37,242 nucleotides of DNA from Octopus bimaculoides (GCF_001194135.2 NC_069007.1:8867002-8904243), one strand, 5' to 3'. Counted from the stretch's first letter, positions 362 through 34,965 are shown. Program-made: numbers and translations. Notes: generated by a model from the letters alone, not told the origin.

Positions 362-391
362 CTGTGGATGAAATAGGAGAACCAGGTGGAG
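362..391 (-). CDS. 30-nt micro-exon, family C, peptide APPGSPISST
   Basis: Minus strand reads actctttgacAG|CTCCACCTGGTTCTCCTATTTCATCCACAG|GTatgt. Phase 1-1, open; flanks are homologous to those at 22472 and 32302. Confidence 0.75.
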
Positions 392-1050
392 CTGTCAAAG
401 AGTGACATTACACTTGTATTATAAACAGGTTTACACAAAACTTCAATACCTCAAATGTACATTTATATAATAGAGAATATATCATTAAATAAAACGTAAA
501 TGATAATCTTGGATACAAATTCCCATATTACTATCTATGTATATTTCAAGTTGTTTCTCTGTAACACATCTACAACAATAGATCATTGTGTATCTTGGAT
601 TAAAACTCTCAGTGTTACACTGTCCTTTGTACCTCAACTGTAACTGATCTTCCTTAATTGAAGTAGCAATCTATGTTATCATTTACTCAAGAATAGAACT
701 CTCATCCACCATTCGTTCAACATTTTAAGAATCTATGATTCTGCAGATTTCATAAAATATGTTGTGATTCTTCCATTTTAGTCTGCAATGGTTTTTCAAT
801 TGTCTACAGATACATTCTTCATACAAAACTTAGCAAAGGAGAATTCAAATGTGAGACAAGTATCCTAAGATTAAGAAGATCTTTTTGACTTCACAATAAA
901 TATTAACTTTAACAAAATAAAAAACAACCAGCTATAGACCAAGGTATTTTCACTGCTTCCATGTTGTAGAACTGGTAATTTGTACTTATAATAAGTATAT
1001 ATAATTAAAATATAAAGACATTTCATATATTGATATTAAAATATCCATAC

Positions 1051-1080
1051 CAGTGTGAGTACAGTTTGGGCCAGTTATCC
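1051..1080 (-). CDS. 30-nt micro-exon, family G, peptide GITGPNCTHT
   Basis: ctttgattacAG|GGATAACTGGCCCAAACTGTACTCACACTG|GTatgg. Phase 1-1, open; paralog of 8583, 15647 and 33699. Confidence 0.7.
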
Positions 1081-1559
1081 CTGTAATCAAAGAGTGAATA
1101 TCCATTTACTTCCTGTCATACAATATTTAAGCTGATATGTGTTAAAAAAAACAAAGTACTATTTAGCATAAGTATCTCAGTAAACGTAGAAAATTACAAT
1201 CAAGACATCTTTATTTAAATGTAACAGTAAATATATTAAGAATGAATTAACTGTTGACATAATGAAAGTTCAAATGATATTAGTTAACATGCTGAGTGAG
1301 AAAAGACAAACAGACCTACAGATAGCTTATGAGTAATAAATATATTTCTTGCTGCAATCCATGGTATCGCACAACTTCCAATTCCTCTCTCTCTCAAATT
1401 ATTTATATATCTGTTATTCTATATAAAAATATATTTAATGAGCAATTATTATTTCTACACAATAAATCAGTCACTAAGTATGACAGTATAGTAACAAATC
1501 CATATAAGCATTAGATATGAATGAACCGCAGCTGGGTTTAATGTTGTTGATTAGAAACA

Positions 1560-2848
1560 CAGGGTGTAACAGGTAAACTGGGACAAATTTCAAAGGGGTA
1601 GATTTCTAATTGTATAGATTTTGTTGGAGTCTAAATTATAAATATTACCAGCTTGAATAATCACTTGTGCTATTTTTTTATTTCTACTTGAACAAGTTTA
1701 TAAATATTAATAAAGAATTAAACTGTTAGAAGTGTAATTTCTGAATTATTCTGCACTGGCAAAAATGCTGAGGAGATTGTTAGAGCCATAAAGTATGCTA
1801 AATCTACTGTTTTTAGAGTTGTAGCCAATTTGAAGAAAAGTCAGGAGGTTCAGAGAAAGCCTAAAATCCTTGCAGTGACTGAAAACGCACACCTCGCTTA
1901 TTAGCAGGACTTAAAAGATCAACCAAATTGAACCCATCAAAATTGAGGGTGAAGTTGGCTCAAGATCGAGGAATCAGTAAAATGACCATTTCTAGGGCTG
2001 TGAAACAAGACCTCCATATGGAATCATCCGTGAGAAGACACTGTAACATCCTAACTATGCACTCCAAAGCCATTTGAGTTGAAAGAAGTCCAAAACTTCT
2101 CAGTCATCTGAAACATTGGGCTGGAGATGTCCACATCTTTGTGGATGCAAAGTAGTTCATGGTAGAACGAAGTTGCAAACCATGAAAACTCATGAGTGAT
2201 AGTATACAACCCTTCCCAAGTACCCTCAGCTATGCATAGCAAGAATCCAGCTTCCATTATGGTCTGTGGAGCTGTTGCAAAGGATGGGAAATTGATACCT
2301 CCACATTTTATTGAAACGAGTCTTAAAATCAATGGAGCAGAGTATCTCAAAATCTTAAAAGTTTTGTTGTCTTGGATTAGGAAGCATTAGAATGCAAGTC
2401 GAGCCCTGTTTGTACAGGACTCCACACCCACTCATTCTTTGAAAAGAGTGTAAAAATGTTTGTAGAAGGAACTGCCCATGTTTGTCCCTAAAGATATCTG
2501 GCCCTCTAGCTTACAAGGTTTGAATTTGTGTGATTTTTGGCTAAGGGGTGCAGTTGAAGTAATATCCAACACAACTTCTCACAACTGTGTATCTTCACTG
2601 ATGGTTTCAATCAAGTGAGCATTCGGTAAAATGAAAAAGGAAGAAATAGTTAAGGCATGTGTATAATTTCGTAAACAGATTAAGCAGGTAAAAAAAAAGT
2701 AAATGGCAGTTACATTGAACTGAAAAAATTGCTCAACACTCCACAATAAATTGGCATAAACATAAAACCTGCACTGTTTGATTTTTTCTGAGTTATACTA
2801 ATTAAATTAAACATACTTAAATGGTCCTAGTTTACCTGTTACAGTCTA
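1560..2848 (+). mobile_element. Decayed maT (DD37D) Tc1/mariner-superfamily DNA transposon, 1289 bp
   Basis: Imperfect TIRs: cagggtgtaacaggtaaactgggac versus right-end revcomp tagactgtaacaggtaaactaggac. TA on the right, CA on the left. Transposase remnant KNPASIMVCGAV...VQDSTPTH...DIWPSSLQGLNLCDFW has 37 residues between the last two Asp; several stop codons. Confidence 0.85.
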
Positions 2849-2850
2849 TA

Positions 2851-3020
2851 GTTTCATATGATATTTATACATTGTATAGTTTTTTTTTAATTAGAAATAG
2901 CTTCATATAATATTTATACATTCTACAGTTTTTGATTAGAAATACTTCATATGATATTTACACATTTTATAGTTTTTGATTAGAAATAGTTTCATATGAT
3001 ATTAATACATTCTATAGAAT
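2851..3020. repeat. Minisatellite, about 4 copies of a ~45-bp unit
   Basis: Unit approximately tttttgattagaaatagcttcatatgatatttatacattctatag, starting immediately after the maT right end. Confidence 0.75.
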
Positions 3021-3095
3021 ATAAATGTACATTTGAGGTATTAAAGTTAAGTGCAAACCAGTTTATAATACAAATATAATGTCACTCTTTTACTG

Positions 3096-3125
3096 CTTCA
3101 ACTGGTTCCTCTATTCCATCTACAG
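3096..3125 (+). pseudogene. Inverted, splice-dead copy of a family C micro-exon (ASTGSSIPST)
   Basis: Plus strand aaaccagtttataatacaaatataatgtcactcttttacTG|CTTCAACTGGTTCCTCTATTCCATCTACAG|GGaaac matches the reverse complement of the C-exon units. Acceptor AG>TG, donor GT>GG. Confidence 0.75.
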
Positions 3126-33122: not shown

Positions 33123-33152
33123 CTGTAGATGAAATAGGGAAACCACTTGCAC
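33123..33152 (-). CDS. 30-nt micro-exon, family C, peptide GASGFPISST
   Basis: Identical to 32575, with AG/GT intact. Confidence 0.75.
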
Positions 33153-33698
33153 CTGTAAAAGAGTAGCATTATATTTGTATTATAAACTGGTTTCCACAAA
33201 ACTTTAATATCTCAAATGTACATTTATATACTACGGAAGAGATAATTAAATAAAATATAAATGGTAAACTTAGTTCATATATTACATAGAATCTATGTTT
33301 ATTTCAAGTTCTTTCATTAAATACTTGTCTCTAGAACACATCTACAAGAATCGATCAGTGTATATCTTTGATTAAAATTCTCATTGTCACACTGACTTTT
33401 CTGCTGTAGTTATAAGAACTCCCACTTTATTGAAATAGCAATGCATGTATCATGTCTTCAAAAATACTACTATCGTCCACCACACATTTATTCAGTATTT
33501 TAGGAATGTATTATTCTATATATTTCATACAAACGTTGTGATTCTTCCATTTTAATCTACAATTTTTATTCAGTCATCAAATATACATCTTCTATACAAA
33601 ACTTATCAAAACAGAGGAGAACTCAAATTATATTTAAAATTAATACATATAGTTAGAATATTAAGACATTTTGTTTGTTAATATTAAAATTTCCATAC

Positions 33699-33728
33699 CA
33701 GTTTTAGGGCCTGTTGAACCAGTTACCC
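33699..33728 (-). pseudogene. Family G micro-exon with mutated acceptor (GVTGSTGPKT)
   Basis: ctttgattacTG|GGGTAACTGGTTCAACAGGCCCTAAAACTG|GTatgg. Frame open and donor intact; acceptor AG>TG. Confidence 0.65.
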
Positions 33729-33984
33729 CAGTAATCAAAGAATAAACATCTATTTGCTTTCTATTATACATCACTTTAGCTGATAGGTATTACAATAACA
33801 AATTACTCTATTGTGTAAATATTTGAGCACATGTGGAAAATAATATTGCATGTTTAAGGTAAAAATATCATGATTTGTTGACATATGAGGGATATGTTTG
33901 AATCACAGGAAGGTTAAGAGAGAAAATAGTGTTTGTATGTGGCAGATACACAAATAAAATAAACATTAAACACAGACATGCATT

Positions 33985-34255
33985 AGATTTTCTTAAATAC
34001 CCAAGAGGCTCCCTAGAGATTGTTGATAGTTTCTGTTACCTAGATGACCAAGTTAGCAGTGCAGATGGATGTTCTGAAAGTATAGAAGTTTCGATCATCA
34101 AAATTGATGGAACTTACAAGGAGACCCAGTGAAGTGTGGGATAAGATAAGGGCTGATGCCAAGTTACTGAACCTCACAGAAGAGATGACAAAAGAGGGGA
34201 ATATGTGACAGTATGATGTTCTCAAGAAGACTCGTCTACATCAGCAAACCTGAGT
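33985..34255 (+). mobile_element. Old RTE LINE fragment
   Basis: KYPRGSLEIVDSFCYLDDQVSSADGCSESI is homologous to the RT C-terminus at 23811-24166; boundaries approximate. Confidence 0.65.
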
Positions 34256-34358
34256 TCTATGAGTACTAAGTATATTGTACTCTCATGTTTACTGAACTTT
34301 TATATTTTCTACAAAATAAATCAGTTACTTAGTATAGTTTCAACTCCATATATAAGCA

Positions 34359-34743
34359 GTGGAGGCGCAATGGTTCAGTAGTCAGGGCAGCGGACTCGCG
34401 GTCATAGGATCGTGGTTTCGATTCCCAGACCGGGCGTTGTGAGTGTTTATTGAGCGAAAACACCTAAAAGCTCCACGAGCCTCCGGCAGGGGATGATGGC
34501 GAACCCTGCTGTACTCTTCCACCACAACTTTCTCTCACTCATACTTCCTGTTTCTGTTGTGCCTGTGATTCGAAGGGTCAGCCTTGTCACACTGTGTCAC
34601 GCTGAATATCCCCGAGAACTACGTTAAGGGTACACGTGTCTGTGGAGTGCTCAGCCACTTGCATGTTAATTTCACGAGCAGGCTGTTCCGTTGATCGGAT
34701 CAACTGGAACCCTCGACGTCGTAAGCGACAGAGTGCCAACAAC
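34359..34743 (+). mobile_element. Full-length tRNA(Arg)-like SINE family 1
   Basis: A/B boxes, (CAA)n tail and 9-bp TSD atataagca (34350-34358, 34744-34752). Confidence 0.92.
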
Positions 34744-34929
34744 ATATAAGCATAATAGGGCAAACGGACCCAGCAGGACTAAATGTTTTTGATGAGAAAT
34801 AGTTTTATATGTTATTAATAATTATCTCAAACCACTTGTGGATAAGCTAGAATTCTATCGTAGAATGACAAATTATATTCAGTAATATTTTCACAATGAA
34901 GACTAAACAGACAGTAGAACTGTACTTAT

Positions 34930-34965
34930 CTGATGGAGTGAGAGATATGCCAGATACACTTGGTC
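34930..34965 (-). pseudogene. Family A micro-exon with mutated donor (GPSVSGISLTPS)
   Basis: Exon body is identical (36/36) to 8162-8197 and the acceptor is intact; the donor reads ATaagt instead of GTaagt. Confidence 0.65.

Follow-up and report, generated by a model that had tools for sequence, protein, structure and literature searches.

Very small symmetric exons characterise the micro-exon genes (MEGs) of schistosomes. These exons measure 36 nt or less, have lengths that are multiples of three, can be skipped in frame, and have bodies that evolve fast (PMC4350168). High ratios of nonsynonymous to synonymous substitution rates (dN/dS) have been reported for them, and the protein they encode has a signal peptide and is either secreted or anchored in the membrane (PMC4350168). 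In a MEG, conventional 5' and 3' exons enclose a coding region made up mostly of micro-exons, whose alternative splicing gives rise to variant proteins (PMC4350168). MEGs have been reported as restricted to platyhelminths, where they comprise about 25 families (PMC4350168), and some of their products are Thr-rich and O-glycosylated (PMC4671649). Here, a micro-exon array is described from a mollusc, Octopus bimaculoides. It lies in a window of 37,242 nt (GCF_001194135.2 NC_069007.1:8867002-8904243), which is the whole stretch of DNA that was analysed, with positions counted from its first letter. The window contains 18 intact segments of 30 or 36 nt that very probably belong, or until recently belonged, as exons to an unannotated gene segment.

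Short or iterated exons also underlie several better known proteins. In the elastin gene, all exons are of phase 1-1 with a split G-NN junction codon, and they are small, cassette-like, and subject to extensive in-frame alternative splicing; hydrophobic VPG-type exons alternate with Lys-Ala cross-linking exons. The PEVK region of titin is encoded by many short, symmetric, tandem-duplicated exons of about 75–90 nt. They specify a disordered intracellular spacer that is charged and rich in Pro, Glu, Val, and Lys, and its length is set by differential inclusion. The hinge of human IGHG3, a vertebrate immunoglobulin gene, consists of tandem 45-nt micro-exons with co-duplicated short introns. It is a Pro/Thr-rich, O-glycosylated spacer whose length follows exon copy number, built from 2–5 copies of one exon type with Cys-containing repeats and constitutive splicing. 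Classical mucins carry their Pro/Thr/Ser (PTS) repeats within one large exon. Lastly, Hayashi and Lewis (2000, Science 287:1477) reportedly found that the spider flagelliform silk gene is made of iterated exon–intron units, whose introns resemble one another across repeats no less closely than the exons do. The silk exons are large and Gly/Pro-rich, and the product is a fibre protein.

The octopus segments are most readily explained (with a probability of about 0.62) as a currently functional, unannotated array of cassette micro-exons that encodes a mucin-like spacer. The window would lie wholly inside one large, transposon-laden transcription unit on the minus strand. The 198-residue chain encoded by the tandemly duplicated cassettes would form a disordered, probably O-glycosylated spacer or stalk within a larger protein, either secreted or exposed at the surface, and the remaining exons of that protein would lie beyond the window.

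Architecture of the array

All 18 intact exons are on the minus strand, distributed over eight contigs within the window. Nine are 30 nt and nine are 36 nt long, giving 594 nt in total. Six-frame translation recovered exactly the 18 peptides proposed in the first-pass annotation, and its account of their structure was borne out when every exon was read with its flanks: a pyrimidine tract and CAG before the exon, G/GT after it (the slash marks the exon boundary), a length of 30 or 36 nt, phase 1-1, an open frame, and membership of one of five families (A, B, C, D, and G). Relative to the peptide coordinates, the true exon bounds are shifted 1 nt to the left. Each exon starts one base past the first letter of the annotated peptide codons, and its final G opens the codon that follows. 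In the claimed frame, none of the 18 exons contains a stop, while the two alternative frames have stops in four and two exons.

The count of 18 holds for intact exons but not for the array as a whole. BLAST and family nhmmer profiles bring the total to 22 units, four of them decayed, and 21 of the 22 share the same orientation. Further exons were sought with a splice-signal scan, a composition scan (all phases, both strands), BLAST, and the family profiles, and only the same 22 units were found. The span proposed earlier, ending at 34965, also needs correction, as that position belongs to a decayed D-family unit outside the 18 exons on its own list.

In transcript order, a decayed D unit and a decayed G unit are followed by A-A-A-A-D-B-C-A'-B-C-B-C-G-D-G-D, then by a decayed C unit and an inverted decayed A unit, and finally by G-A. 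The first intact exon, A1 (33123–33152, 30 nt, GASGFPISST, cttttacag/...ACAG/gtatat), opens a tandem array of 4.0 copies at 32259–33357 on the minus strand (TRF: period 274 bp, 95% matches), in which each copy consists of one A exon and 243–244 nt of intron. The exon of A2 (32849–32878, 30 nt, GASGFPISST) is identical to that of A1, and its unit is 96–97% identical. A3 (32575–32604, 30 nt, GASGFPISST) and A4 (32302–32331, 30 nt, GASGSAISFT) complete this tandem array, which, judged by its repeat structure, is a recent expansion.

Downstream, the families alternate. D1 (29808–29843, 36 nt, GSSVSDISFIPS, ttgttgcag/...TCAG/gtaaat) and B1 (27556–27591, 36 nt, AASTGTPTVSSA, cttttgcag/...GCAG/gtttgt) precede C1 (24232–24267, 36 nt, VPRIAGPSVTPT, ttattgcag/...ACAG/gtaagt), whose differences from C2 and C3 are all synonymous. 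A divergent A-family member, A' (22472–22501, 30 nt, GSVGPSVSFP), is followed by B2 (20440–20475, 36 nt, ASSTGTPTVSSA), C2 (17926–17961, 36 nt, VPRIAGPSVTPT), B3 (17001–17036, 36 nt, ATSTGSPTVSSA), and C3 (16320–16355, 36 nt, VPRIAGPSVTPT). The remaining exons, all with the same splice signals and open frame, are G1 (15647–15676, 30 nt, GATVSKGSQT, ttgattacag/...ACCG/gtatga), D2 (12036–12071, 36 nt, GTGVSGISRSPS), G2 (8583–8612, 30 nt, GFTGSKGLQT), D3 (8162–8197, 36 nt, GPSVSGISLTPS), G3 (1051–1080, 30 nt, GITGPNCTHT), and A5 (362–391, 30 nt, APPGSPISST).

Homology detected by BLAST reaches 150–440 nt around each exon, that is, exons and their intron flanks were duplicated together. To judge from these repeated units, the alignments show an array that grew by unequal crossing-over of exons with 150–440 nt of flank. 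Higher-order blocks are also present, with B-C occurring three times and G and D paired as G-D or D-G. Families A, B, C, and D match one another's profiles and constitute one lineage. Family G (four units) is a separate lineage that cannot be aligned to A–D.

Across positions −55 to +70 of the 18 intact units, the only invariant flank positions are tract Ts and the CAG upstream, and the donor GT, +7, +9, and +12 downstream. The acceptor pattern common to all exons is ...T.t.Tt.CAG/. Families A–D also have a conserved motif 25–33 nt upstream of the AG (TATAATAC, TCTAATAC, or ATAATGCAA), which from its position is a putative branch site. A complete unit would consist of this branch-site-like motif (TATAATAC or TCTAATAC, about 25–33 nt upstream), the pyrimidine tract, CAG, the 30- or 36-nt exon, and the G/GT donor.

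Each exon begins with codon bases 2 and 3 and ends in G, so the junction codon is always G+NN. The exon downstream determines which residue this codon encodes: Gly in 11, Ala in four, and Val in three of the 18 exons. The 10 or 12 residues that an exon contributes do not depend on the exon before it, so any subset of exons stays in frame, and the junction phases show that every combination could be joined in this way. Some exon skipping that changes the length of the spacer is likely, by analogy with PEVK, elastin, and MEGs.

The conserved intron flanks were also considered as pairing RNA structures. This was rejected on the folding z-scores of the three units folded (0.18, −0.52, and −0.53), none of which showed structure. 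Rfam and tRNA scans of the window for structured RNA genes were empty.

Coding signature and composition of the chain

Base composition over the 18 exons is strongly dependent on codon position: position 2 is 55% C and 4% A, and position 3 is 84% A/T and 2% G. Three-base periodicity is present in every family, and GC content is 47% in the exons versus 35% in the window. Elsewhere in the window, stop-free stretches with at least 80% S/T/P/G/A/V account for 0.38% of 30-nt and 0.09% of 36-nt windows. A generic scan for a pyrimidine tract plus AG...G/GT with an open phase 1 yields about four background candidates of 30 or 36 nt per strand, none of them S/T/P-rich. The plus strand holds no comparable candidates, and the composition scan, run in all phases, found no further convincing exon on either strand. 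Set against this background, the segments are not chance occurrences. Transposons in the window lie on both strands and contain many stops, in contrast to the uniformly oriented intact units.

The chain consists of 24.2% Ser, 15.2% Gly, 14.6% Thr, 12.6% Pro, 8.6% Ala, 7.6% Val, and 6.6% Ile, with Ser, Thr, and Pro together making up 51%. It is of low complexity and nearly uncharged, with seven basic residues (Arg, Lys, and His together) and one acidic residue (Asp). The modular Ser/Thr/Pro/Gly-rich chain that had been proposed is thus what the composition and the 10- and 12-residue modules reveal, and the chain has the high Ser+Thr+Pro content in short tandem modules that characterises mucin-type PTS domains.

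Other identities were tried and set aside. A proteoglycan, part of the original proposal, is rejected on composition and motifs: there are no acidic Ser-Gly clusters, only one of the 198 residues is Asp, and nothing suggests glycosaminoglycan attachment. Collagen was rejected because there is no continuous Gly-X-Y and no Pfam collagen match. The 10-residue modules of families A and G break the triplets across junctions, Gly does not recur at every third position in families B and C, and in family D it is confined to positions 1 and 6. Near-triplets occur in two of the three intact G exons (GFTGSKGLQ and GATVSKGSQ) and then break. Pfam searches returned nothing beyond a meaningless match at E=9.2, and PDB searches returned composition-level noise only.

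Decayed units

Four units have lost splice signals. In the D-family unit at 34930–34965 (minus strand), the donor GT has become AT, while the exon body is identical to that of D3 (GPSVSGISLTPS) at 36 of 36 positions and the flanks are 82–90% identical. This unit is a pseudo-exon, the product of a base error, or a 19th exon. The G-family unit at 33699–33728 (minus strand, GVTGSTGPKT) has its acceptor changed from cag to ctg, and its open reading frame (ORF) remains open. At 4100–4138 (minus strand), a C-family unit (VPRIPDPSVYCN...) has lost its donor and changed in length. Finally, an A-family unit at 3093–3124 (ASTGSSIPST) is inverted, making it the sole plus-strand unit, and has lost both acceptor and donor. 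The last two carry more than one lesion, as is expected after a unit escapes selection.

Two further observations concern these units. The bodies at 34930–34965 and 8162–8197 are identical despite diverged flanks. Gene conversion could account for this, as could strong constraint or, in the upstream copy, an error of one base at the AT 'donor'. In addition, a 44-bp tandem repeat (3.7 copies) adjoins the sole inverted unit (2848–3017 and 3005–3192) and may mark a local rearrangement.

Constraint and alternative explanations

The strong argument for constraint is the one drawn across families. Two lineages that cannot be aligned, A–D and G, share size class, phase, and splice signals, and the same signals, size classes, phase, and composition recur in all five families. 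Within families, ongoing constraint is supported only modestly, by tests that are in part post hoc. None of 168 exon columns contains a gap, compared with 61 of 500 flank columns (about 11 indel events, estimated P about 0.03). Splice dinucleotides have changed five times, against 10.6 changes expected at the flank rate (Poisson P about 0.05), a comparison in which all 22 units were counted and which thereby avoids selecting intact units only. The three substitutions in family C are all synonymous, and amino-acid replacements mostly remain within S/T/P/G/A/V. Selection, as these comparisons show in part, appears to maintain the splice signals together with the size, reading frame, and amino-acid make-up of the exons, and not their precise sequence.

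A number of observations weigh against a functional array. The exons are predicted from genomic sequence, and the mucin-like spacer function is inferred from composition. The constraint tests are individually weak (P about 0.03–0.05). Conservation is no higher in the exon bodies than in the 50 nt that flank them on each side (overall Fisher P = 0.12). Conservation in family A is 0.79 in the exon versus 0.91 and 0.87 in the flanks, and in family G it is 0.68 versus 0.87 and 0.81 (Fisher P = 0.037). In the G-family units at 15588–15736, 8524–8670, 992–1140, and 33640–33788, about 45 nt past the donor and about 50 nt before the acceptor are better conserved than the 30-nt body. The ratio of nonsynonymous to synonymous differences (pN/pS) is about 1 or higher among the paralogues of families A, D, and G (range 0.5–2.6, on tiny counts); on equally small counts it reaches 1.1–2.6 in family A, is 0.46–0.88 in family B where computable, and is 0 in family C. 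Variable sites are spread evenly over the three codon positions (15/11/16), and 4 of the 22 units are already dead.

The protein searches point the same way. The 198-residue chain has no match at E≤0.01 in a collection of 5.8 billion proteins that takes in the O. bimaculoides proteome of UniRef as well as proteins called from Logan run assemblies. A 220-residue version, extended by the two decayed units with open ORFs, has no match at E≤10 among the 5.8 billion proteins. This agrees with the earlier suggestion that the gene is unannotated, and it speaks against abundant, simply spliced expression. It is nonetheless weak evidence, since repeated exons of 30–36 nt would break k-mer assemblies and evade gene finders.

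One explanation for these observations is that the segments were true exons when they were duplicated, but that this part of the array, or the whole gene, is now unexpressed and drifting to decay. A dN/dS ratio of about 1 and an even spread of variable sites over codon positions are also the outcome of neutral decay, and such a history would equally suit exon bodies no better conserved than their flanks, the loss of splice sites in some units, and the lack of a matching protein among public predictions. However, 18 of the 22 units keep the four splice nucleotides, length, and frame even though their flanks diverge by as much as 10–25% from the family consensus. No exon has an indel, family C has changed only synonymously, and a D exon body is identical between copies whose flanks have diverged. 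The composition stays S/T/P/G-rich after many replacements, and the 274-bp array is a recent expansion. A relic is unlikely, and the functional array remains the preferred explanation.

A second possibility is nested within the functional array. Combinatorial inclusion of the exons might vary a secreted glycoprotein whose exon bodies are under diversifying selection, as in MEGs. All of the exons are symmetric and, as each ends in G, independent of context. The bodies of A and G are nominally less conserved than their proximal flanks, significantly so for G when taken singly, and the pN/pS of family A exceeds 1. Highly branched splicing could explain the absence of assembled transcripts and proteins. 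Conversely, the difference between exons and flanks is not significant overall, this contrast is confounded by the conservation of splice signals and by the boundaries of the duplicated units, and families B and C are conserved, contrary to diversification. Diversification of this kind is more doubtful still than a relic. At its boldest, and just as tentatively, the idea is that a cephalopod independently evolved the MEG design: a secreted O-glycosylated protein with dozens of autonomous symmetric micro-exons, joined combinatorially, regulated via conserved proximal flanks, and with bodies that outpace their introns. Its absence from annotations would then reflect the failure of short-read aligners and gene finders to detect repeated 30–36-nt exons.

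It is highly improbable that the segments are a non-coding segmental or tandem repeat whose likeness to exons is accidental and which never underwent splicing. In favour of such a repeat, the 18 copies arose by duplication and so do not count as independent, and the within-family tests are weak. Against it, the unalignable A–D and G lineages share CAG/30 or 36 nt/G/GT, phase 1-1, and S/T/P-rich coding, the three-base periodicity is strong in every family, length differences between families are multiples of three, invariant columns are mostly splice signals, and background candidates on either strand are never S/T/P-rich.

Gaps and mobile elements in the introns

The window contains 10 runs of N, totalling 4,328 N, compared with the six listed previously. 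The additional runs are at 23224–23811, 25377–25942, and 30454–30816 within the span of the array and at 35489–35843 outside it. The shortest distance from an exon to a gap is 405 nt. Introns between consecutive intact exons are free of gaps in 10 of 17 cases (243–3,575 nt), and the other seven contain N. The longest gapless contig (11613–18580) holds the five exons C2, B3, C3, G1, and D2. As every exon is symmetric, the frame of the chain is independent of the gaps. The number and order of exons do depend on gap content, and more exons could be hidden there.

The introns are rich in transposons, including Tc1 and Mos1/mariner transposase fragments, a reverse-transcriptase fragment, repeats that resemble short interspersed nuclear elements (SINEs), and foldback repeats. 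Broken transposon genes lie at 6968–7810(+), 12229–12471(+), 14313–15220(−), and 23818–24212(−). They are of Tc1 type (HTH_Tnp_Tc3_2 and DDE_3), Mos1/mariner type (HTH_48 and Transposase_1), and reverse transcriptase. The reverse-transcriptase fragment, at 23818–24212(−), is cut by a gap and has 68–86% identity to O. bimaculoides UniRef entries by BLASTP (best alignment), with two other entries at 97%. Its nearest named relatives are O. bimaculoides proteins, which points to an Octopus host, most likely this species, and bears out the cephalopod origin supposed in the first-pass annotation. None of the Octopus transposon proteins that were retrieved is encoded exactly within the window, and exact-protein look-ups of two edge ORFs and ten internal ORFs gave no record.

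A SINE-like repeat of about 400 bp occurs at 10061–10339(+), 10936–11251(+), 18237–18580(−), 22846–23223(+), 28335–28729(−), and 34343–34762(+), with copies 92–94% identical. Four gaps adjoin copies of this repeat, which probably caused those assembly breaks. A foldback-type element is present in two copies (9029–9573 and 35213–36138), with (TTA)n/(TAA)n cores enclosed by long inverted arms. Arm length and complementarity are 186 nt and 86% in one case and 185 nt and 97% in the other. The copy at 35213–36138 spans the gap at 35489–35843, while the copy at 9029–9573 ends at the edge of another gap. From the positions of the SINE-like and foldback elements, repeats account for at least 6 of the 10 gaps.

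Significance and comparison with known systems

A literature search found no paper on cephalopod micro-exon genes or micro-exon mucins. If expressed, the octopus locus would offer a clear example of a micro-exon array beyond the flatworms, with a separate exon for each 10- or 12-residue mucin-like repeat. It would provide a tractable case of repeat-rich extracellular spacers that grow by exon-plus-intron duplication and are possibly varied in length by splicing. Further, its product would be a candidate ingredient of the mucus, adhesive, or egg coat of the octopus, and the locus would mean that cephalopod annotations can overlook whole classes of micro-exon coding sequence. If unexpressed, the segments would be instructive exon-like relics that are able to mislead scans based on sequence only.

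The likeness to schistosome MEGs that was first proposed stands as to architecture, given that 18 of 18 exons are small and symmetric, but not as to family membership, as there is no sequence relation at E≤10 and the phylum is a different one. In both systems, tiny symmetric exons allow in-frame skipping. However, a MEG is a small gene that has an exon for the signal peptide and exon sizes ranging from 6 to 36 nt, whereas the octopus array has two exon sizes only. Moreover, the octopus array, which spans more than 33 kb, plainly consists of tandem paralogues that were copied along with the intron sequence around them.

The IGHG3 hinge is similar in that its tandem micro-exons were duplicated together with intron sequence, but the octopus array differs in having 18 intact exons from five families. 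Elastin shares the phase 1-1 G/NN junctions seen in all 18 octopus exons. An elastin-like protein is nevertheless rejected, as the octopus chain has 1% Lys, no KA or KP motifs, 39% Ser+Thr, and no cross-linking exons. Unlike titin PEVK, the chain is uncharged and mucin-like, and unlike flagelliform silk, it is S/T/P-rich and encoded by tiny exons. With the PTS domains of mucins, it has in common its Ser+Thr+Pro content and its short repeated modules, in which composition is conserved while sequence drifts. In contrast to classical mucins, however, each 10- or 12-residue repeat of the octopus chain has an exon of its own.

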